A DNA stretch of 64,000 nt from Guillardia theta CCMP2712 (Eukaryota; Protista; Cryptophyta). A model generated the notes under the pieces. The model saw nothing but the letters and a program-made list of their open reading frames with translations, was not told where the DNA came from and searched no databases. Location: positions 1 to 64,000 of the forward strand of contig NW_005434555.1 in NCBI RefSeq assembly GCF_000315625.1, in the 5' to 3' direction. This document shows positions 3,001 to 51,783 of the stretch, in pieces (position 1 is the first letter of the stretch; each line of letters starts with the position of its first letter). The position numbers and the translations under genes are program-made.

Positions 3001-6000
3001 GGTAGCGTTGCTGCCCTGCGTCGACGACCTCGCTGCCGCTTCAGCATCGTAGAAGCCAGCCTCGCACACGCAGTCTGACCGAGACGAGCTGCCCTGCACG
3101 GAGGTGGAGTGGATGGGGCAGGTCGCACAGCCCGTGGCGCCTCCTCCAAGATATGCCGACGAGCTCCCGCTGCAGTTCCCCCCGCACGACGCAGCTCGTG
3201 ATCCATTGCTGTATGTGCCTGAAGGGCATACTGAGCACCTCTCAAGCCCCCTTTCCGGCTTGTAGTACCCCGGCGGACACATCATACATGTCGTGTATCC
3301 AGGAGATGCTGACGTCTCTTGAAACGTTTGTGAATGGTTGTCCAGGCTCGCATTGATCCCTGCTAAAAGTGTAAAGTTCCTCAGCGCCAGCATATAGCCT
3401 GCATCGCATCCGCACTCGCTCGCCGAGGGGCAGCCCAAGCAGCCTCCCAGCGCTGATTTCAACCCTGATATACTGCACTCGCACGACTCGACGCTTGCTG
3501 CGCCTGCCGACGACGACGAGTGCGGGGGACAGGTCGTGCAGCTTGTCGATCCGCCCATGGACGAGTAAGATCCTCCCGGACACACCGCACACTCCTCGTT
3601 GCCTGGTCCCGCCTTGTAGGTGCCTGGCTTGCACGGATCGCAGCCGTAGCGATCGAGCGGCTGCTGCCCCCTTGCGGAGATGTTGGAAGCGCTGCCAGGC
3701 GTGAAGCCTGGTAAGCATTGACATGCAGCGATGGATGTGCTCTGCGCAGGGGAGCTTTGATGGCTCCCGCAGCTCTTGCAATACGTCGCCCCGACTACGT
3801 CATTGTAGGATCCTGCTGGACACCCTTGACAGCCAGTAGATCCATTCAGACCGCTCACGAAGCCCATGGTGCACTTACAGTCGTCTACGCTGGAGGAGCC
3901 CGGTGCTGACTCCATGTCATCCGGACAGTGTTGACAGAACGTCAGCCGGCTTTCGTTGTTGTATGTACCCCCTGGACAGGCTAGGCAAGCCCCGCTCTTA
4001 GGGTCCATGTACTTGCCGCTCGTGCAACGACAATCAAGGATGCTTGCGCTGCCTGTAAGCCTCGAGGTCATGCCTTCGGGGCAAGCTGTGCAGGTTGTCG
4101 ATCCCTCTACATCGCTGTAGGACCCGGAAGCACAAGGGATGCAACTTGGCCCCCAGCGCCTTGCGCCCGATGTGTTGGCAGGAGGGCTTTCATCGTAGAA
4201 GCCTGCCTGGCACTTGCACTCCCATATGTAAGAGCTGCCTGCAGCAGAGACAGTGTGGGCTGGGCACTCGGCACACACTGTAGAGCCGGTACCATTGCTG
4301 TAGCTTCCCTCCGCGCAACGGCGGCAGTCCGGCCCAGCTGCAAGAGAGGAAGCGATGGTAGCGTTGCTGCCCTGCGTCGACGACCTCGCTGCCGCTTCAG
4401 CATCGTAGAAGCCAGCCTCGCACACGCAGTCTGACCGAGACGAGCTGCCCTGCACGGAGGTGGAGTGGATGGGGCAGGTCGCACAGCCCGTGGCGCCTCC
4501 TCCAAGATATGCCGATGAGCTCCCGCTGCAGTTCCCCCCGCACGACGCAGCTCGTGATCCATTGCTGTATGTGCCTGAAGGGCATACTGAGCACCTCTCA
4601 AGCCCCCTTTCCGGCTTGTAGTACCCCGGCGGACACATCATACATGTCGTGTATCCAGGAGATGCTGACGTCTCTTGAAACGTTTGTGAATGGTTGTCCA
4701 GGCTCGCATTGATCCCTGCTAAAAGTGTAAAGTTCCTCAGCGCCAGCATATAGCCTGCATCGCATCCGCACTCGCTCGCCGAGGGGCAGCCCAAGCAGCC
4801 TCCCAGCGCTGATTTCAACCCTGATATACTGCACTCGCACGACTCGACGCTTGCTGCGCCTGCCGACGACGACGAGTGCGGGGGACAGGTCGTGCAGCTT
4901 GTCGATCCGCCCATGGACGAGTAAGATCCTCCCGGACACACCGCACACTCCTCGTTGCCTGGTCCCGCCTTGTAGGTGCCTGGCTTGCACGGATCGCAGC
5001 CGTAGCGATCGAGCGGCTGCTGCCCCCTTGCGGAGATGTTGGAAGCGCTGCCAGGCGTGAAGCCTAGTAAGCATTGACATGCAGCGATGGATGTGCTCTG
5101 CGCAGGGGAGCTTTGATGGCTCCCGCAGCTCTTGCAATACGTCGCCCCGACTACGTCATTGTAGGATCCTGCTGGACACCCGTGACAGCCAGTAGATCCA
5201 TTCAGACCGCTCACGAAGCCCATGGTGCACTTACAGTCGTCTACGCTGGAGGAGCCCGGTGCTGACTCCATGTCATCCGGACAGTGTTGACAGAACGTCA
5301 GCCGGCTTTCGTTGTTGTATGTACCCCCTGGACAGGCTAGGCAAGCCCCGCTCTTAGGGTCCATGTACTTGCCGCTCGTGCAACGACAATCAAGGATGCT
5401 TGCGCTGCCTGTAAGCCTCGAGGTCATGCCTTCGGGGCAAGCTGTGCAGGTTGTCGATCCCTCTACATCGCTGTAGGACCCGGAAGCACAAGGGATGCAA
5501 CTTGGCCCCCAGCGCCTTGCGCCCGATGTGTTGGCAGGAGGGCTTTCATCGTAGAAGCCTGCCTGGCACTTGCACTCCCATATGTAAGAGCTGCCTGCAG
5601 CAGAGACAGTGTGGGCTGGGCACTCGGCACACACTGTAGAGCCGGTACCATTGCTGTAGCTTCCCTCCGCGCAACGGCGGCAGTCCGGCCCAGCTGCAAG
5701 AGAGGAAGCGATGGTAGCGTTGCTGCCCTGCGTCGACGACCTCGCTGCCGCTTCAGCATCGTAGAAGCCAGCCTTGCACTCGCAAACAATACTCGATATT
5801 TTGCTCGTAAAATCCAGATGGCAAGTTTTGTTGCATGTTGAAATATTTTCAGCAAAAAGACAATCAGCAAGCGAGTCACATCGAGCACCAAAAAACCCAG
5901 AGAAGCACCTGCAAAACGATTCAAACCATGAAGCAAAACGATCCACAACCGGGCTCTCTCCTCTCGTGCTCTCCCTTCCCTCCCCGTCCTCCTTCCTGGC

Positions 6001-7912
6001 TCTCTCCTCTCCCCCGCCCTACCTGCACGAGCCGTCCCTCCCCCGACACCGCCCGTGTCCGCTGCAGTTGACCTTGGCTATGCACCCTCCCTCGCACTCG
6101 CCTCCGTATCGGTTTCTCCTGCACGCCTCGCACCTCGTCCCCGCGAGTCCTCCGTAGCACTCGCACCGCCCTTGCAAGCANNNNNNNNNNNNNNNNNNNN
6201 NNNNNNNNNNNNNNNNNNNNNNNNNNNNNNNNNNNNNNNNNNNNNNNNNNNNNNNNNNNNNNNNNNNNNNNNNNNNNNNNGCCCGCTATCCTCTCCCCCG
6301 CAGTCGGCGTCCGTCTGGCATGTTCCCTCGCGTCCTGCCGTCGCGTTCGCCGGCTCGGAGCAGTTCTGTCCCGTGTAGCCCCCGAAGCACCTGCCCACGC
6401 CCTTCCCGTCAGCCCCTCCTCTCCTCCCTCCTGTCTATCTCCCCTCTCCTACTACCATCCCCGTCTCTGCCGCCCTGCCCCTCTGCCGCCCTGCCCCTCC
6501 TGTCTCCCGGCGCCCGCTCGCCCCTCTTCTCCCCCTGGCTCTTTCCTCTCGTGCTCTCCCTTCCCTCCCCGTCCTCCCTCCCGGCTCTCTCCTCTCCCCC
6601 GCCCTACCTGCACGAGCCGTCCCATCCCCGACACCGCCCGTGTCCGCTGCAGTTGACCTTGGCTATGCACCCTCCCTCGCACTCGCCTCCGTATCGGTTT
6701 CTCCTGCACGCCTCGCACCTCGTCCCCGCGAGTCCTCCGTAGCACTCGCACCGCCCTTGCAAGCATCGCCCGCTATCCTCTCCCCCGCAGTCGGCGTCCG
6801 TCTGGCATGTTCCCTCGCGTCCTGCCGTCGCGTTCGCCGGCTCGGAGCAGTTCTGTCCCGTGTAGCCCCCGAAGCACCTGCCCACGCCCTTCCCGTCAGC
6901 CCCTCCTCTCCTCCCTCCTGTCTATCTCCCCTCTCCTACTACCATCCCCGTCTCTGCCGCCCTCCCCCTTGCCGCCCTGCCCCTCCTGTCTCCCGGCGCC
7001 CGCTCGCCCCTCTTCTCCCCCTGGCTCTTTCCTCTCGTGCTCTCCCTTGCTCCCCCGTCCTCCCTCCCGGCTCTCTCCTCTCCCCCGCCCTACCTGCACG
7101 AGCCGTCCCATCCCCGACACCGCCCGTGTCCGCTGCAGTTGACCTTGGCTATGCACCCTCCCTCGCACTCGCCTCCGTATCGGTTTCTCCTGCACGCCTC
7201 GCACCTCGTCCCCGCGAGTCCTCCGTAGCACTCGCACCGCCCTTGCAAGCATCGCCCGCTATCCTCTCCCCCGCAGTCGGCGTCCGTCTGGCATGTTCCC
7301 TCGCGTCCTGCCGTCGCGTTCGCCGGCTCGGAGCAGTTCTGTCCCGTGTAGCCCCCGAAGCACCTGCCCACGCCCTTCCCGTCAGCCCCTCCTCTCCTCC
7401 CTCCTGTCTACATCCCTCCTCCCGGCTCTCTCCTCTACCCCGCCCTACCTGCACGAGCCGTCCCATCCCCGACACCGCCCGTGTCCGCTGCAGTTGACCT
7501 TGGCTATGCACCCTCCCTCGCACTCGCCTCCGTATCGGTTTCTCCTGCACGCCTCGCACCTCGTCCCCGCGAGTCCTCCATAGCACTGGCATTGGTTGTT
7601 GAGGCATAACTGTCCTACTGTTTCATTACAGTCTTGGTCGGTATTGCATGATAAAGTATATGATCTCAATTGGAAGCGGCTGGATCGGAAATCCTTTTCG
7701 TTGGGGAGTTTTTTTCTCATGAGTGTGGTTTGTTTTAAAGAGATTATTGTTGACAGGATGGAAGTATTTGATGTTGACAAGATGGATGTGTTTGAGGTGG
7801 ACATGATGGTTGCGTTTCTGGAAGGGGGTAGGGACATTTCAGCAGAACAGGCCTGCAGCAGGAGGACGAAGACTATGCTTCCCATCGCCCTCCTGTGCTC
7901 GCGTCTTGCCAT
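15..7912 (-). CDS. Giant secreted/surface cysteine-rich protein: signal peptide, EGF/laminin-EGF-like exons, then many GCC2/GCC3 (ephrin-receptor-like/TNFR-like) Cys repeats
   Basis: ATG at 7912 gives MARREHRRAMGSIVFVLLLQACSA. EGF-like exons (C..CYGGLAGTRC..C..NCSGHGRC) are joined by gtaggg...cag introns. The last acceptor ttttgcag at 5909 opens a long exon of CxxCPxGxY...CxxCP...C-x-C repeats. Frame break near 1974-2033 and an N gap at 6181-6280. The 3' end is uncertain. Confidence 0.8.
41..5775 (-). repeat. Coding tandem array, 1356-bp (452-codon) unit, ~4.2 copies
   Basis: The anchor ctgtgcaggttgtcgatccc recurs at 41, 1397, 2730, 4086 and 5442 (spacings 1356, 1333, 1356, 1356). Units differ by only a few substitutions. 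Confidence 0.97.
5950..7580 (-). repeat. Tandem exon+intron repeat (~486-bp unit; EGF-like exon plus GA-rich intron)
   Basis: Identical 93-aa ORFs at 6604-6885 and 7090-7371 are offset by 486. Further partial copies lie at 6020-6398 and 7445-7580. Confidence 0.9.
6181..6280. other. Assembly gap (100 N)
   Basis: A run of N inside the EGF exon repeat. The flanks abut almost exactly in the repeat unit, so the true copy number is unknown. Confidence 0.99.
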
Positions 7913-42660: not shown

Positions 42661-45183
42661 GTTGATGAAGGTGTAACACGCTGGATCCACCACCATGGCT
42701 CCAGATGATGTCGCTGCGACTTCTCTCCCCTGCGGATGATGCGTATGCTCCTGCACGTGCGAGACGGGAGTTGCAAGCTGCCCGATGAGCGGATACACCA
42801 GCAGGTGGTTCACCGAGGAGAGGTCAGCTCCGTAAGTCTCGCGCAACTTCTGGTTGAGAAGATCGTCTTTGCCTTTGTAGAACTCGAGGACTTGCTGCTA
42901 GCACGATCAGGACTGACTCAGGATGAGGTTGGAGCACCTGAATCTTTTGAATCTGCACAGGATTGTAGATCTTGTAGAAGTGAAAGAGAGCCTGAAACAG
43001 AGTGATGTAGTGGATCGCCTCCATCTCAATCGCTGCTTGATCATACAGGTGCTGCAGGTGACAAATCAAACTACGGTTTAAAGACCGTACACACAATACT
43101 TTGATAGAGCTCTGCGTGCCGTTCAATCCTCCCATTGAGATATCCGCCCAATCCGCTGCTTGACCAACCCGCTGTGCCCCATTCGTACCTTTCGCTGATG
43201 CAGTTGCAGCTACATCACGAAGAATCAGGGGGGGCATAGCAGAGTCTCATCAAGACCTGAGTAGCTTCCATTCAGATCAGCGTTGTACCTCTTGCGCAAA
43301 GACTCGTTCAAGTCTTCCAGTCGGCCTGCACGGCATGTCATTCTCACACCTGAGACTGTGCCAGCGAGCGACACCTTCGAATTGATCCAGAAGAGAGCCG
43401 ATTGTGTCTATCTTTGAAATGTTGTGAACACGATAGAACTCAATCAGCATTGTTCCTATTCGACTTCGCCTATCCAGACTCTCGAGAAGATCTGCACATT
43501 TTGACAAATAATCCTTGCTCGATTTATCATGAGAGTCCTTGGAATGATGAGCCACGACGGAGTTCAGAGATTCAATGGCTTCTAGCGTTTGTGCGGCAGT
43601 CGGTCGCAACCTATTGAGATGTCAACTTGCAGAGGCTGGAGGGTTCAGATTCATACGAGGGGTGCTGCATTTGCAGAAGCGAAAAGAGTTTCTGATAGAG
43701 TTTCCTGACATCTTCTGGTAAGCCCTTCAGTGCGTGATCAGTTGGCAATGGAAGCCCTACAGTTTACAGCATCTGTCAATATAAAGCACACTTCCCGATG
43801 ATCTGCATTGCAACCTTTCTCGTTGATTGCAGTGCGAAGAGAGTTCATAGTGTTTGGAATGTCTGAGTACGGTGGCATTTCCATAGCAATCTCCCACATG
43901 ATGACACCATACGCCCAGACATCTACTTTCAGAGAAAGACAGCTCCCATTGATCTGCTCTGGGGCCATCCAAGGGGGGCTCCCTATCGAAATCAACAGTT
44001 AGCTGTAGACAAGAGCTATCCCTCCCGATCAACCTGATATCGTGGAAGAATTATAGCTGAGGAAACAAATGAAGGTGATTGTCAATATTGGACCAAGAAA
44101 ATTGCTATCAATGTCACCTCTCATGCTGCAACTTTCTTGCACATCCGAAATCAGCAATCTTCACCTTTCCTTCGTCTGCCACGTAACCAACCTGAGTGTC
44201 TGGAAACTTTCAGCAACGATTATGACCTGTTAAAAGAATATTCTTCGAGCTCAAATCTCGATGAACGATATTTTTTGAGTGTAGGTAAGCAATCTTGAAC
44301 ATAAGATTAGTCATCAAAATTTGGTGAAAGCTTATGGAATACCCCAGTAGCTAGGTCTCTAAGCATTGACATCTTTTGAAATGCAGAAATCTTATGTTTT
44401 TTGTTTTCGTTAATCAACCTATACAAGTTTCCTCCACCACATAATTCGAAGATCTGCATCGAGCAGCATGACCACAACTAATATTGGCAATGACATGTAG
44501 TTACCAGGCCAATAGAGAGTTTGTTGCAATCCTCTTCGTCTTTAGGAAGAGTTAAAGTAGAGCCCATGAAGGCTACAACGCTAAAGTCTCATAGTTATCG
44601 TTGATGCTTGCAGAGATCATGTTAACCTGGGATGGCGCAGCTGAGTGATAATTTCCAGTTCTAGTGACAAATCTCGAATAAGTTGAGGAAGCGATCTTCC
44701 TGACCCTGCCGTCTATGCATCGATGGGCGTCAGATCTAATCGCATGAAATACGCGTTTACCGGTTTAAGATATTTAACTGCAACTGGACTCCCATGAAAC
44801 ATAGCTTTTTCAATGGACTAAAGCAATTTTCTTCGTTAGTGACACCAAAGCAAAGTGTCTGAAGTCCTTACGCCAAATGCTCCACTATCAAGATTTTCTC
44901 CTCCGTTTATGCTGGAATTGGGGACAGCAACTCCAAGAAGTCTTCAAATCAGATTAGTGATGTAGTTGATGTCAAGCCATCCATCAGTAATCAAGGCGCA
45001 CGAAAACACACCAATTCAATCATGTTCTCTATTTCCATTTGTCTCTACACGAGCAAATCAAAAGTCGAATTCTTACGTTGTGATGACGGATACAAATTCT
45101 TGAAGCTGTTCTCCATTAAACTCTCTGCTCTTCTCTGCCCATCGTAATGCTTTTGCCATCGTTGCTTCCAGTTCCAACGACAT
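42650..45183 (-). CDS. TKL-group (Raf/MLK-like) Ser/Thr protein kinase
   Basis: Spliced motifs SGAFG, AVKYLK, LRHP, HRDLSSKNILL, KIADFG, GSPPWMAPE and DVWAYGVIMWE over many short exons. Confidence 0.9.
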
Positions 45184-46388
45184 GGCGTCGACTTCTAAAA
45201 ACGCCTACCCCTGCTAGAAACATAACCCCCGTTTTTGATATTGACACACCCGGTCCGTCTCAGGCTAGGGTTCCTGTTACTTCCACCACCCCCTTCCACC
45301 GCCACCTTCCCCGCCAAACTTTCAAATTTCACACAACCCCTACCCCCTAGGGACAACTTCTTTCTACCCTCCCTACAGCAAATTCTCTCGACTACCCTGT
45401 GGGCAACAATGATTGGGACCCCTACCCCAGCTATCAAGCTCCACTTGTCCCTCATCTCCTCACTGCCCTCCCAGTAATCGGGCCAGGCACAGCAGGCTCA
45501 GCCTGAGTCACAACAGCCGGCCAATCGGGCCACAAAGGTTGTCGGATTCATCGCCCTCATTCCACTCAACTACCACCTCGTCCACTATGACCCCCCCCCC
45601 CCCCCCCCTGGTCTCCCACTTCCGATATTCCATGTACCCACCCACCCCTCGGAGCTCTCGCCATTGGCTACAGATTGGCTACAGTACACCTCGCCCTTCA
45701 GAAGGCTTGAAGTTTGACTTGGCAACTTGATAGAAGAATCTTTACCTGTCTGTACCCCCTCCTGAAGTTGAATCTCGCAACCCCCCAACACAACTACCAC
45801 CCCCCTTCTATGAGGTTATCGAATGGTAATGACCACCCCACCTCTACATCGATTGTAAGGGTTGGAGTGCAATGTTCTGAGGCGAGGTCCTTCGGTCTAA
45901 AAAGGGGGGTCGGAGGAATTTGAAGGGGTTACTACCGGTATGCACCTGGTAAGAAGAAGGGGTCATATGAAGGAAGGGCGGGGAAAAGCGAACGATCGAT
46001 CTCTTCCTGAGGGGTCCTCGAGACGGAAAAAGCGGGGTAGGCCGCAAGACTCTCAGGGGTGGGCTTTGCTTCAGGGGGTCGTGTGAGGGAGACAATAGGG
46101 GTAGGGTCCATCTGCTTCAAATCTCAAGGAAGTGAAGCTTTCGGCACGAAGCAGCACAGTTAGAGGAGATGGTAGTACACAACATGCAGAGCGAGAAAAG
46201 GATGGAAGATTCTCATAGAGCATCGCCTCACAGCTCTCCTGATTATACCCGAATCTCATGCCACATAGCGACTCGCTTCTTGCTGGTACTCTTGATTGAA
46301 ATCTGACGGTGAATTGGCAGTGCCATGACTTCCTGGGCTGAAATGAAACTCCAAGCAAACCCAAGATAAGTTCAGATTGACCTGAATC

Positions 46389-49300
46389 ATGCAAGACGAA
46401 TTGTGTTCTGTCTGCGAAGAGTACATCGCAGAATTTTTTTGTCACAAATGCGACAGGAAAATATGCGTGGTATACACCATGAGATAGTTTTGCAAAATGA
46501 TTCACATGAAAACTCTTGCAGGAATGTGATGAGGTGATCCATCTTATTCCTGAAAAAACTGTGCATCAGCGAGTGTCACTTCGTGGAAAGGGAGCCAATC
46601 AGTCGATCAATGCTGGGTTAGCAATTTTTACTTGTCAAACTCCTTGTTGACAAACTTGCTGCAGGCAAATGCCGTCTGATCGATACGGTTATTTGTTGAA
46701 TTTTCTGACAAAACTTCTCATATGCTATTTAGGTCACAACCAATCCCAGAATGTCTCTTATCAACAGTATACTCCTAGCAAGCCTGCATCTGACCTGACA
46801 AAATATGGTGCGGACTCAAAGATCTCTCACTACCCACTAACTTGCAAGTAGGAAATCGTGCAGACAGCATTGGATATGGCAGATCTCCGCATGATACAAG
46901 AATGGGCGGAGGGTATTTTCATGTTTCATTCCCGTTGGAACATTTCTTTTTGACCTCTGCTTCAAGAGATGCCAAGTTCCAGCAGCAATTGAATGAGACG
47001 CTCAATCAGAATTGGACTGAGTTCCAGCAAATGACAAGTGGCCACTATGGCCAGGCACACTTGAGTGCTGAGGAAAACTCGGTGCCTGAACAGGTCAAAA
47101 TCAAATGGGAAAGAATTTCTTGAGATTGATACAATATCTCAGGTCTATGGAAGGCAGAGTTTGGTGGAGATTGAGAGGCCTCAATCGACAAAAGCCGTCG
47201 AAGATCAAATGCCATCAATGCTCGACTATTACAAAGCAGGTAACGCTAATAGCCGAATGTGAATGAAGTGAAAGTGAATGCAGGGCAAAATACCGACGTT
47301 TACAACGAGAATAGCGCGTATCATGACGACCAGGATTCGTTTGAAGAATGCTTCGATGATGTATATCTGTGTCTGACCTCGCCGATACCGCACTGACGGG
47401 AGATGCAAGGTACCTTGGGAGCCGCCCGATGATGATGACGACGACGACAACTCCAAACCGCTTGCCCCTCCTCCATCCAATCTTGGATACAACAAATCAG
47501 AAGTTCAGCAACAAAAATCCAACGATCCAACTGCCGAAGCTAAGGAGCAGTACTCCGCAATGCCCACAATTGGCACTTCACCTACGGCAGAATCTGAAAA
47601 TGCTCAGAAACCAGCAGCAGCTTTGGTTGCAGCGGGAATGACTGGTCTGGAAAAAAATTCAACGGTCCAAATGGTTCACTAAATTTCAAGGCAAATAATT
47701 TTATGTTGACAGGTTCCTGATGACGCTTTAGCAAAGCTCAAAGATACCCAAAGCTCTCCAAATGAGCGATCTCCGGCCTCTGGTGTCCATGCTGACTCAA
47801 ATCAGCTGCGGCAAAAATTTGTGCAGGTATCTTTGAGGACTACAGCTAAACTTTGGCTCACGTTCGGTTGTATTCAGAGAGGAGCAGCGAGTTTTGTTGC
47901 ACAGCTTCGAGATACAAAAGACAATTCTGACATGCTTGTATCCTTGATTTTGACAAAGGAGATGCTTTTGGTTGCACAGAAACCAAGGTTCGTGACTGGA
48001 CTAGAAAGCATTTGTACACTGACTTCAAGTTTTTGTTTCAGCTATAAGACCCTTTTCACCCTAAAGTTTACGGCGGGAATCAAAGCTTTTCCAGTACCAA
48101 GAGACCAGAATGGAGTGATTGTCATATCCTCTGAGCTTCAAGAACCTCTCGTTTTTGGTTGTGGACAGGTCAGGGAACAGGATTGGATATTTGATCATTC
48201 CATTAAAGCCTTTTCAGGCCAAACTCTTTCAAGAGACTCTCGAGGCGTTTGTTACTCTCAGCGGCTGCTCAAATCCAAATCCTCTTAATCGACCTCAGGT
48301 CAGTCCTGTTCTACGATCCAGAGGTCCTGATTTTGTCAAAGATGGTTGCCCCGGGCATCATGAATGTTATTGAAGTCGAACCAAAAGCTGGAGGTTGTTT
48401 TGGAGTCAACGTTTGACTTACATGACATGAGCTACAGAACAATCTGGAGCAGCAGGTCAAGTTCTTTCATCAGACAAGAAGGCTGGAGATTCATCATCAG
48501 CATCGCAATCAAACGCAAAAGTACCACCTCCTGGTCAAGCGGTTGCTTCTCCTCCTCCTCCACCACCACCTCCTCCGCCGGCTGTTGGAGGTAGCGAAGA
48601 TCTCAATATTTATTCGTTTCTTGCTGACACCATTCGACCATCAGGTCCACCACCACCACCGCCTCCTCCTCCGCCTCCTCCTCCAGCTGGCGGAGGTGAT
48701 TTGACAGAAACCGTGAGAGCTTCTCTGATGCTCGCGGATAGCAGGACCTCCTGCCCCACCACCACCCCCTCCCCCACCTCCTGCCGGTGGAGCTGGGCCC
48801 CCGCCCCCGCCCCCGCCCCCGCCTCCGCCTGGAGGAAAAGGAGGTCCTCCGCCTCCTCCGCCTCCTCCGCCTCCTCCGCCTCCAGGTGAATTGAAGCTGA
48901 GCAATCTTCAAGCACTGACTGGTAGACGTTGTAGGTGGCGGACCTCCCCCCCCACCTCCTCCCCCAGGACAAGGCCCTCCTCCGCCTCCGCCTCCTGCTG
49001 GCCTGAAGCCAGGTCAAGGGAATGCATCAGTAAGGAGCAATTTGCGAGGAAGTAGCTATCGTGATAAGGAACGCAGGTTCCTGGATTACGACCAAAGGAA
49101 AAGAAGCAGCCTGGGAAACGAGTCAAGCAACTGCACTGGATCAAATTGAATGAGGTGACTCATGACTCTCGAATGAAGAGCTAGAACCTTGACACTTACA
49201 TTCAGAGGAAAGTGCCAGGAACCATATGGGAGAGTATGAAAGATGAGGAGATTGGGTTGGAGATCGAACAGGTCGAGACATTGTTTGGAGTTAAAGTTGT

Positions 49301-51495
49301 GGCGAAGGATTTACACAAGGTTGCGAACTTCTTTAAAATCCGTCAGACGCTCCATTAAGAGTTTTTGATCAGGACGATGATCTTGACTCCTCTAACAATG
49401 CTGGGCCAAGAAGGAAGAAAGCTGTTATTCTTTTAAGCGCAAATCGCTCGCAGACAATTGGAGTCCTTCTTTCTCATCTCAAAATCCCGTCGTTTGCACT
49501 CTAACCATGCATTTAATAGCTGATTAATTTAACAGGCATGATGACTTTCGGAAAGCGATAATGTCTTTAGACACGCGAACGCTTCAGGTATTCATTGAAC
49601 AACTGGCGCTTTCTGATTGTAATGTGCTGCCGATACACAGCCAAATTTTGTAGTGCAGCTGATGAGACTCTTGCCAACGGATCAAGAAGTTGCTGCCTTA
49701 CAATCATATACTGGACCAAAAGAGGACTTGGGAGTGGCAGAGCGATTTTTGTTTGAGCTACTTTGTATACCTCGCCTAAAGCCTCGCTTGCAGGTAAGCT
49801 TTCAGATTGCAATGTTGCAGGCTACCCATAACTTTGAATGACAGTGCTTTGTCTTTATCCTTGAATTCAACGCAAGATTGCATGATCTATCAGAGAATGT
49901 AGAGGTATCAAGTGATCAACTGTTTCGCTGTTGCCAACATTCTGCAAGGTCTTCAGCTACGCAATTCATGACATCAAGAGATGCACCTCGCTCGTCAAAG
50001 TGCTGGAAATCGTGTTGGCCCTCGGCAACTATATGAACGGCCAGGGACCGAAAGGAGGAGCCTACGGTTTCAAGCTTGAGGTCTCCTTGCATCTGACGTG
50101 TACTCGACCATGATGGATCAACAGTTCTTGACCAAGTTGGCCGACACCAAGACTTCAGATAATAAGAGCACTCTCTTGCATTACCTGGTAAACTTTGAAA
50201 GCTGTTGTTTTCTTGTCTCTGAAATACTTTGAGGTTGATTACATACATCGCAAATTTCCAGAGTACATCAGTTTTCCTCAGGAGCTGAGCAACGTTGAGA
50301 TTGGTGCAAAAGTGTCAGAAAACATTGTGAGCTCTGCTTGTGGGAGGCAGTCACTCTGAGCTTGACTGCAGGTGGATGAGATCAGCAAGTTTAAGAAGGA
50401 GATCAAATTCATTTACGAGGAGATGAACAAGCCTTACTACAAGAGCAATGCTAAAACAGACCCTTGCGGCTCAAAACTAGAGCAGTTCTACCACACCGCA
50501 TATCGGGACATGGAAGTGCTCGAACAAAACAAGAAAGAAGCTTTGGCGATGTACAAGGAGCTTTCCAAGATGTGAACATGAATGTTTTCATCCGTTGCTC
50601 TGTTGATGTGAGTCTCAGGTATGGCGAGGAAGAGCTCAAGCCCGACGAGTTCATGACCTATATTCATCAATTCGCTCAAAGCTTCAAGGAGGCTCATAAC
50701 GAGAACGTTCGCAAGAAAGAGGAAGAAGAACGTGTGCGGGCAAGACGGGAGCAATTCTTGAAGCAGATGCAAGAAAACGAACGTCTCGCCGAGCAGCGAC
50801 GCCAGCAGAAGCAGATGGCTGGCGGTAAACCTCAGCCGCAGCCCAGCAAAGACCCGGTGAAGTAGAAGTTAATCTTGGGGTTTTGACTCATAACCTTTCA
50901 GGTCCCTGAAAGACCCAAGCAGAACAAAAGCGAACCTCACGCTCGTCACGAGCCCCCGCAGAAACCGCCGCTGAGGCCAAGCAACGGAGCTCATGATGCT
51001 GCTCAAATCACTGACATGATCAACCAAATGCCCAAGAGTGGCAAGTTTGTATTCAAGAAGAACAACAGTGCAGGCGAAGGTCAAAACCTCCTACGCGATC
51101 ACCTGGGCCAGGTAGCTGCTGGTTGTCGCTCTGTCTCAAGCCTCATGTTCCTGCAGGGCAAGAAAGGTGCCGGAACGGCGCCAGTGCAGGAGGAGGACGT
51201 TTTCTTTGATGACATCATCGATGTTCCTTCAGAGCAAAGTCAGAAGCATGCCATGCCACCGCTGCCTCCCGGCTTAGGTACGTCGCAGCAGGTGTGTCCT
51301 CATCTTGACTCGGCCGGCAGGTCCCAGGCCTGGCTCAACAGGCTCGAGCGCAAGGCTGAGCAAGGACGGAGATGGCGGAGATATCCGCTCGAACCTCAAG
51401 GACTTTGGGAAGTTCTTGTCGCCCAACCACAAGATCGCAAACAGACGCAAGTGAGAGGCCTGAACGAAAGAGACGAGAAGAGATTGAGAGGCTGA
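46389..51495 (+). CDS. Formin (FH1 + FH2) with an N-terminal B-box zinc finger
   Basis: Spliced N-terminus CSVC..C..C...C|.ECD..IH.......H.R. Polyproline FH1 at 48540-49010. FH2 motifs KQLHWIKL, VAERFLFELLCIPRLKPRL, VLALGNYMN, GAYGFKL and KLADTK. Confidence 0.88.
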
Positions 51496-51783
51496 TTGTA
51501 GTGGTGGGTTGCTGTTGACATGAATACATTCTAGTTCATCAGACACAGACCTTGTCTCCTCTCCTCCCCTCTCCTCCCCTCTCCTCCCCTCCCCTCTCCG
51601 CTCTCCTTGACCCGCGCTCTGTGTCTGGTATCTCTTTCTCTCTTCTCCACATGGTCCTTCTCTTGTCTTTGTCGACTCCAAAACTTTTCAGACTCTCCTG
51701 CTTGTCATGATGAGCCTTTACTTAAAAAAAGTCATGATGATTGCTAAAAAAAAGTCAACTGCAAAAAGATGTCGGGGGGGATC

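Follow-up and report, generated by a model that had tools for sequence, protein, structure and literature searches.

Unbranched actin filaments are built mainly by formins, whose noncatalytic heads set where and when this activity takes place. A dimer of FH2 domains nucleates the filaments and stays on their barbed ends, capping and elongating them, and FH1 supplies profilin-actin. In Diaphanous-related formins (e.g., mDia1), this core is embedded in the arrangement GBD/DID-FH1-FH2-DAD. Here we describe a locus of the cryptophyte Guillardia theta CCMP2712, lying on the forward strand of the first 64,000 nucleotides (nt) of contig NW_005434555.1 (hereafter, the window). We conclude that 46389-51454 (+) is very probably one nuclear gene, encoding a formin of ~1200 residues in which a B-box zinc finger, a linker, a PH/PTB-like domain, FH1, FH2, and a tail follow one another. 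Like the Diaphanous-related formins, the predicted protein has an FH1-FH2 core, a noncatalytic N-terminal head, and a short conserved tail motif; unlike them, it carries no GBD, DID/FH3, or armadillo repeats, and its tail motif does not match Drf_DAD.

In TRIM and BBX proteins, B-boxes serve in interactions and self-association. With the B-boxes of CONSTANS/BBX and TRIM proteins, that of the Guillardia formin shares its ligand spacing, its predicted fold (0.8 Å), and a Pfam zf-B_box match above the cut-off, but the protein has a single B-box and no CCT domain, RING, or coiled coil, and the partner is a formin. N-terminal domain shuffling is heavy in protist formins, whose heads include PH, ANK, C2, PDZ, PTEN, C2H2, and PHD fingers and more (PMC2386819). 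The Guillardia protein repeats the pattern of head-swapped formins, such as the class II plant formins with PTEN-C2 and the stramenopile and other formins with PH, ANK, C2, or PDZ, in that FH1-FH2 is kept and the targeting module exchanged. PH domains have been recorded on a few stramenopile and choanoflagellate formins (PMC2386819); in comparison with these, the PH-like domain described here is too divergent for Pfam. A zinc finger is combined with FH2 in Caenorhabditis elegans FOZI-1 also, where the fingers are of the DNA-binding C2H2 type (PMC2386819). In the Guillardia protein the finger is, instead, a protein-interaction B-box at the extreme N-terminus of a standard FH1-FH2 formin. FOZI-1 acts as a nuclear factor.

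The B-box is absent from the formin domains of Grunt et al. 2008, a survey that sampled no cryptophyte (PMC2386819) and is the only place where cryptophytes are mentioned in the formin/FH2 literature that we searched. Cryptophyte formins thus seem to be previously undescribed. Full-text literature searches, with InterPro architectures outside their scope, turned up no paper connecting the B-box with formins, in agreement with the initial annotation of this stretch, which knew of no description of the architecture. We found no report of a B-box on any formin, nor of a B-box and a PH-like domain together on one, and the architecture may sit unremarked in databases. Since head swapping is well documented in protist formins, the finding adds to known head shuffling; the general picture of how formins work is unchanged, and no new kind of machine is implied. 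It does give the B-box repertoire a cytoskeletal partner. A conserved, duplicated class with defined domains and tail motifs also offers a handle on the targeting of actin assembly in a lineage without the Diaphanous-type switch. The word class, used in the initial annotation, is fair, because at least three cryptophyte genera and two G. theta paralogues carry the architecture.

Gene model and continuity from B-box to FH2

The gene model was guided by orthologous transcripts and by open reading frames (ORFs) of relatives, and comprises the following features.

46389-51454 (+), whole coding span: 31 exons, 1208 codons, introns all GT-AG and 41-54 nt long, from exon-by-exon frame bookkeeping
46389-46469 (+), exon 1: start codon and first half of the B-box, with predicted zinc ligands C6, C9, C18, C21, and C26
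46470-46521 (+), intron 1 inside the B-box: 52 nt, GT-AG (GT 46470-46471, AG 46520-46521), junction also in the Hanusia protein P0001
46522-46616 (+), exon 2: second half of the B-box, with C29, H34, and H42, then an H-Q-R-x-x-L motif; 3' end uncertain
46665-47664 (+), linker exons 3-8: low-complexity, with small conserved blocks FQQQL, PWEPPDDDD, and AAGMTG
46665-46807 (+), putative exon 3, within the linker: path ambiguous
47713-48298 (+), exons 9-12, PH/PTB-like domain by fold: N-terminal helix, seven strands, C-terminal helix
48342-48393 (+), exon 13: 52 nt, required for the frame into FH1, from frame bookkeeping and the P0003 peptide
48438-49029 (+), FH1 in four exons (14-17): seven polyproline tracts of 7-13 residues each
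49077-50856 (+), FH2 domain in 11 exons, then a coiled basic stretch: QLHWIKL start, GNYMNG, TLLHYL, and Pfam exon matches
50902-51454 (+), C-terminal tail, exons 29-31: two paralogue-conserved motifs (51007-51060 and 51374-51424), stop TGA 51452-51454

The initial annotation had proposed a formin with an N-terminal B-box that an intron interrupts, and most of what it read by eye stands. The ATG at 46389, the 52-nt GT-AG intron at 46470-46521, and the spliced peptide are exact in the sequence, the junction KICV|ECDE recurs in Hanusia phi, and GT-AG splicing from 46389 does keep a frame open into FH1 and FH2, down to the TGA of the 31-exon model. Its gene end at 51495 was wrong: that position is the end of the unspliced ORF, because the last intron (51278-51320) takes the gene into another frame, the one with the paralogue-conserved motif 51374-51424. 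At the 5' side, an in-frame TGA (46383-46385) lies two codons before the ATG (46389-46391). Between the parts of the gene there is no in-frame stop and no gap longer than 54 nt. A 47-nt intron separates the FH1 exons from the first FH2 exon, and the frame is kept across it; exon 13 finds support in a similar peptide that follows the PH-like helix of the relative P0003 and leads in frame into polyproline.

Pfam searches of the window were made exon by exon; for whole-domain profiles and folds we used natural orthologues (transcript-derived proteins and unbroken genomic ORFs). Two single exons pass the FH2 cut-off (PF02181, 34.8 bits), with 36.2 bits for 49641-49793 and 42.8 bits for 49949-50080. 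Four more exons match less strongly (23.7, 16.9, 14.5, and 11.3 bits), and all six together span profile positions 63-346 of 372.

The order of the parts recurs in relatives. The Hanusia phi protein P0001 (EukProt EP00960_P045726), from the sister genus and presumably transcriptome-derived, is 97% identical to the window over the matched stretches. It runs in one frame from a start Met to the edge of FH1, taking in a B-box joined as predicted, the linker, the middle domain, and the next helix. It maps to window exons 1, 2, and 4-12 and confirms the joins of exons 4-8; exon 1 is 100% identical to its residues 61-88, and exon 2 is identical up to HQRV. In a Geminigera transcript (P0054, MMETSP1102), a Met stands right before the B-box and the frame then runs through the PH-like domain. 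On a metagenomic contig (L010), a single genomic ORF without introns extends over B-box, linker, and PH-like domain; one intron follows, at the position of window 48168/48169, and the coding sequence then continues into FH1 polyproline. In a third, environmental locus (L011), B-box exons, FH1, and FH2 exons are colinear on one strand: ORF 3496-5004 leads from the second half of the B-box into FH1, and ORF 5669-6292 joins FH1 to the start of FH2. The PH-like helix also runs in frame into polyproline in P0003 and P0013, and in the more distant P0026 and P0048 the PH-like domain, FH1, and FH2 (202 bits) share one unbroken ORF. Judged from these sequences, each neighbouring pair of parts, from B-box to FH2, is connected by overlapping natural sequences.

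P0026 and P0048 belong, with P0049 and P0030, to a distant clade (JGI 3300059473; GCA_041443065.1; ENA) in which a PH-like domain ~50% identical to that of the window gene is fused to FH1-FH2. Since the ORFs called in this clade come without a B-box, the fusion of the PH-like domain to the formin may be older than the addition of the B-box.

Within G. theta, genome scans detected, on one strand of contig C11, half a B-box and, ~3 kb downstream of it, FH2 exons. This paralogue (G000:C11:279459-285450, equivalent to L009:2459-8450), which the initial annotation did not include, has the same domain order from B-box to FH2, all on one strand. Colinear blocks conserved between the two copies comprise the B-box exons, the linker motifs, the middle domain, FH1, all FH2 exons, and the two tail motifs. 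The B-box exons are 72% (exon 1) and 83% (exon 2) identical, and the B-box intron falls at the same codon in both, with ~535 nt in C11 and 52 nt in the window. The introns of the two genes do not align. FH1 shares an exon with the start of FH2 in C11 and also in L011, and a proline-rich region is common to the window, C11, L010, and L011. The tail motifs at 51007-51060 and 51374-51424 are 78% and 71% identical to C11 by tblastn, and their ratio of nonsynonymous to synonymous differences per site (pN/pS) is below 0.4; the tail exons match no Pfam family. By eye, the motif 51007-51060 resembles a DAD or WH2 (hydrophobic residues, S-G, then a basic run). We rejected both assignments, since the motif gave no match to Pfam Drf_DAD or WH2, and count this with the points weighed against our reading below.

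The C11 paralogue is much more GC-rich than the window gene at synonymous sites, and its first intron starts with GGA and GCA microsatellites. The genome scan listed at least six formin loci, including C7:699945-702417 and others on C4, C73, and C74; a B-box candidate was found nearby only at C119 (the window) and C11.

The B-box and the PH-like middle domain

Exon 1 alone matches Pfam zf-B_box (PF00643) at positions 4-27 of 42, with 21.1 bits and an E-value of 3.6e-4, and it is among the 15 B-box candidates that a six-frame scan gave for the entire genome (87.1 Mb, 669 contigs). Exon 2, with the second half of the domain, gave no Pfam match by itself. The complete domain was assessed on the spliced orthologue: the P0001 B-box scores 27.3 bits over positions 4-42, against a cut-off of 24.1, and differs from the window domain by one residue, at the very end. 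The B-boxes of P0005 and P0039 also pass the cut-off (27.3 and 27.4 bits). The Pfam check proposed in the initial annotation thus bears out both domains, B-box and FH2. The eight Cys/His positions (C6, C9, C18, C21, C26, C29, H34, and H42) align with six other G. theta B-boxes, in columns at least 70% conserved. Their spacing is C-x2-C-x8-C-x2-C-x4-C-x2-C-x4-H-x7-H, with a C-D-x3-H motif, both of which agree with the plant-type B-box. At the fourth ligand the window B-box has Cys, in contrast to Asp in the plant consensus.

For structure prediction of the B-box, we used AlphaFold2 on the N-terminus of the orthologue L010 (85% identical to window exon 1 and 64% to exon 2). The model has a mean predicted local distance difference test (pLDDT) score of 80, with a core near 90, and by its structural matches has the B-box fold (beta hairpin plus helix, cross-brace). 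Its best matches in the PDB are 7vsq, 7wsj, and 7vsp (CONSTANS, COL2), with a root mean square deviation (rmsd) of 0.7-1.2 Å over 43-46 residues and 33-35% identity. The eight best ranks are taken by CONSTANS/COL2 B-boxes and a Toxoplasma chain, with TRIM28 and PML B-box1 after them, in line with the CONSTANS/TRIM-type B-box of the initial annotation.

Between the window and C11 copies, pN is 0.12 over the B-box exons and 0-0.12 over the FH2 exons; one segment of this comparison (PH_E10a), out of register by a single base, is disregarded. With synonymous sites saturated, a B-box pN within the FH2 range argues that the B-box has been kept by selection in both copies. As judged from sequence comparison, the B-box head is under purifying selection in the two paralogues and is conserved in at least three cryptophyte genera.

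Two chains of Toxoplasma preconoidal ring P2 proteins (PDB 9ya0, chains AC and AD) stand at ranks 7 and 10 among the matches of the B-box model. The formin FRM1 is located at the Toxoplasma preconoidal ring, and the FRM1 paper does not mention B-boxes (PMC12693976). The idea that FRM1 might be regulated by a B-box partner finds no support in that paper, and we set it aside.

The exons of the middle region and their orthologues match no Pfam family at E-values up to 0.1 (PH, PID, IRS, and others). For lack of such a match, we ran an exhaustive protein search with window 47710-48168, in which two in-frame introns are read through without a stop, and obtained 34 matches. We modelled the orthologous segment L011:4246-4680 with AlphaFold2 and obtained pLDDT values above 90 in the core; DSSP assigns the model seven strands, then a helix (119-132), and an N-terminal helix precedes them. 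Foldseek returned PTB, PH, and talin F3 matches at probability 1.0. In VIA-align, the best matches were the PH domain of SCAB1 (Z 14.4), KRIT1 F3 (13.4), GULP1 PTB (12.9), and CERT PH (12.6), and PH, PTB, and FERM-F3 domains, talin F3 included, ranged from Z 14.4 to 11. SCAB1, the top match, is a plant actin-binding protein. On this model, the middle domain is a member of the PH-like superfold (PH/PTB/FERM-F3), outside any Pfam sequence family and with likeness in fold only. The initial annotation had proposed structure prediction of 47870-48300 but overlooked the domain that this check reveals; like the C11 paralogue and the true stop at 51454, it is a feature beyond what had been noted. The linker between B-box and PH-like domain spans ~300 residues and is probably disordered.

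Alternative explanations

Several observations weigh against one continuous B-box formin gene, beyond the rejected assignments of the tail motif. No single transcript or ORF covers the stretch from B-box to FH2, transcript assemblies breaking at the polyproline, and homology searches with P0026, whole and as region 110-215, yielded fragments and the Geminigera transcript but no full-length B-box-to-FH2 protein. Neither these searches nor the one with 47710-48168 returned an annotated G. theta protein. The ORFs of two of the more distant relatives, P0030 and P0048, contain no B-box. P0001 is itself irregular: it lacks 27 core residues of the PH-like domain, and after the PH-like helix its polyproline is read out of frame, which reflects either an alternative or aberrant isoform that skips the 52-nt exon or an assembly error. 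P0001 also skips window 46594-46850, where the G. theta exon path is ambiguous; no in-frame GT-AG pair reproduces its join (…RAKG|RNRAD…, from the end of exon 2 to the exon at 46849) in G. theta. The provisional path given here for 46594-46850 uses introns of 48 and 41 nt, with a putative further in-frame intron of 45 nt (46688-46732). Finally, the beta1-beta2 loop of the PH-like domain, read from the sequence, lacks clearly basic character.

The locus might instead comprise a pair of neighbouring genes, the first for a small protein with B-box and PH-like domain and the second for an FH1-FH2 formin of its own, which segmental duplication would have kept together. That no single transcript covers both halves and that the Hanusia proteins P0001 and P0006 end at the edge of FH1 would fit such a division. 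Moreover, there are 233 alternative open GT-AG paths within 46522-46851 alone, so that a long open frame found by eye over short introns is, taken alone, a weak argument for a single gene. We nevertheless consider two genes highly improbable. The passage from the PH-like helix into polyproline occurs in the same exon and frame in L010 and L011, as it does in P0003 and P0013; FH1 and the start of FH2 occupy one exon in C11 and L011; the unbroken ORFs of P0026 and P0048 span all three parts; and in the window neither a stop nor a long gap separates them. A different objection accepts the exons and holds that the main G. theta mRNA starts downstream or skips the B-box exons, leaving most of the protein without a B-box. 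The irregular splicing of P0001 elsewhere (the 27-residue gap and the frame shift) lends this some plausibility, but we judge it improbable, if less so than a division into two genes: purifying selection on the B-box exons is as strong as on FH2 in both paralogues, the Hanusia and Geminigera transcripts include the B-box, and the Geminigera ORF starts at its Met. Nor is there any same-strand coding sequence upstream of the formin. The nearest long ORF there is on the opposite strand (43738-44032, -) and protein-kinase-like by eye (PPWMAPE…DVWAYGVIMWE), which fits a gene start at 46389.

As to the finger itself, the Cys/His cluster could belong to another cross-brace type (ZZ, HIT, or RING-like), as weaker Pfam matches (CEBP_ZZ 20.7 bits, zf-HIT 18.9, and ANCHR-like B-box 18-20) and the CPEB1 ZZ domain at rank 9 of the fold search might suggest. 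However, zf-B_box alone passes its curated cut-off, the CONSTANS/COL2 chains lead the fold search at an rmsd near 0.8 Å and 33-35% identity with TRIM28 and PML B-box1 next, and the ligand spacing and C-D-x3-H motif fit the plant-type B-box. Another type of finger is accordingly very unlikely, and we retain a single gene for a formin headed by a B-box.

Possible role of the head and flanking sequence

From established formin biology, the FH1-FH2 part of the protein is predicted to nucleate actin and to elongate filaments at their barbed ends. Drf_GBD, Drf_FH3, and DAD gave no Pfam match on the N-terminal or tail exons, nor on P0001, P0005, P0039, and P0026. Given that GBD/DID is absent by Pfam, we infer that the head of B-box and PH-like domain would localise or regulate the formin in its place, standing in for the GBD/DID head of Diaphanous-type formins. 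By analogy with CONSTANS and TRIM proteins, the B-box may be a zinc-dependent module for self-association or for binding a partner. PH-like domains dock on lipids or peptides, and that of the Guillardia formin might dock on a membrane or a peptide ligand. As in Diaphanous-related formins, head and tail motif could in principle form an autoinhibitory pair, in which the B-box or the PH-like domain would hold the conserved C-terminal motif and keep FH2 off. We also put forward a more specific scheme, which is possible but doubtful. Here the head would be a cryptophyte-specific control module that replaces the Rho-GTPase-operated GBD/DID switch: the B-box would cluster or recruit, and the PH-like domain would bind the tail motif 51007-51060 and thereby hold FH2 in autoinhibition, to be released by a membrane or peptide signal. 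If true, this would be a third independently evolved system of formin autoinhibition, beside DID-DAD and the apicomplexan SNAP/rLoop switch (PMC12693976).

Upstream of the gene, the kinase-like ORFs (43738-44032, -) would be a divergent neighbour, with the intergenic region at 44-46.4 kb common to both. Downstream, CT-rich 'ctcctcccct' repeats, whose translation reads SSPLL, come right after the stop in both paralogues (window 51520-51710; L009 8500-8700); they may represent a shared pyrimidine-rich element of the 3' untranslated region, or low complexity only.

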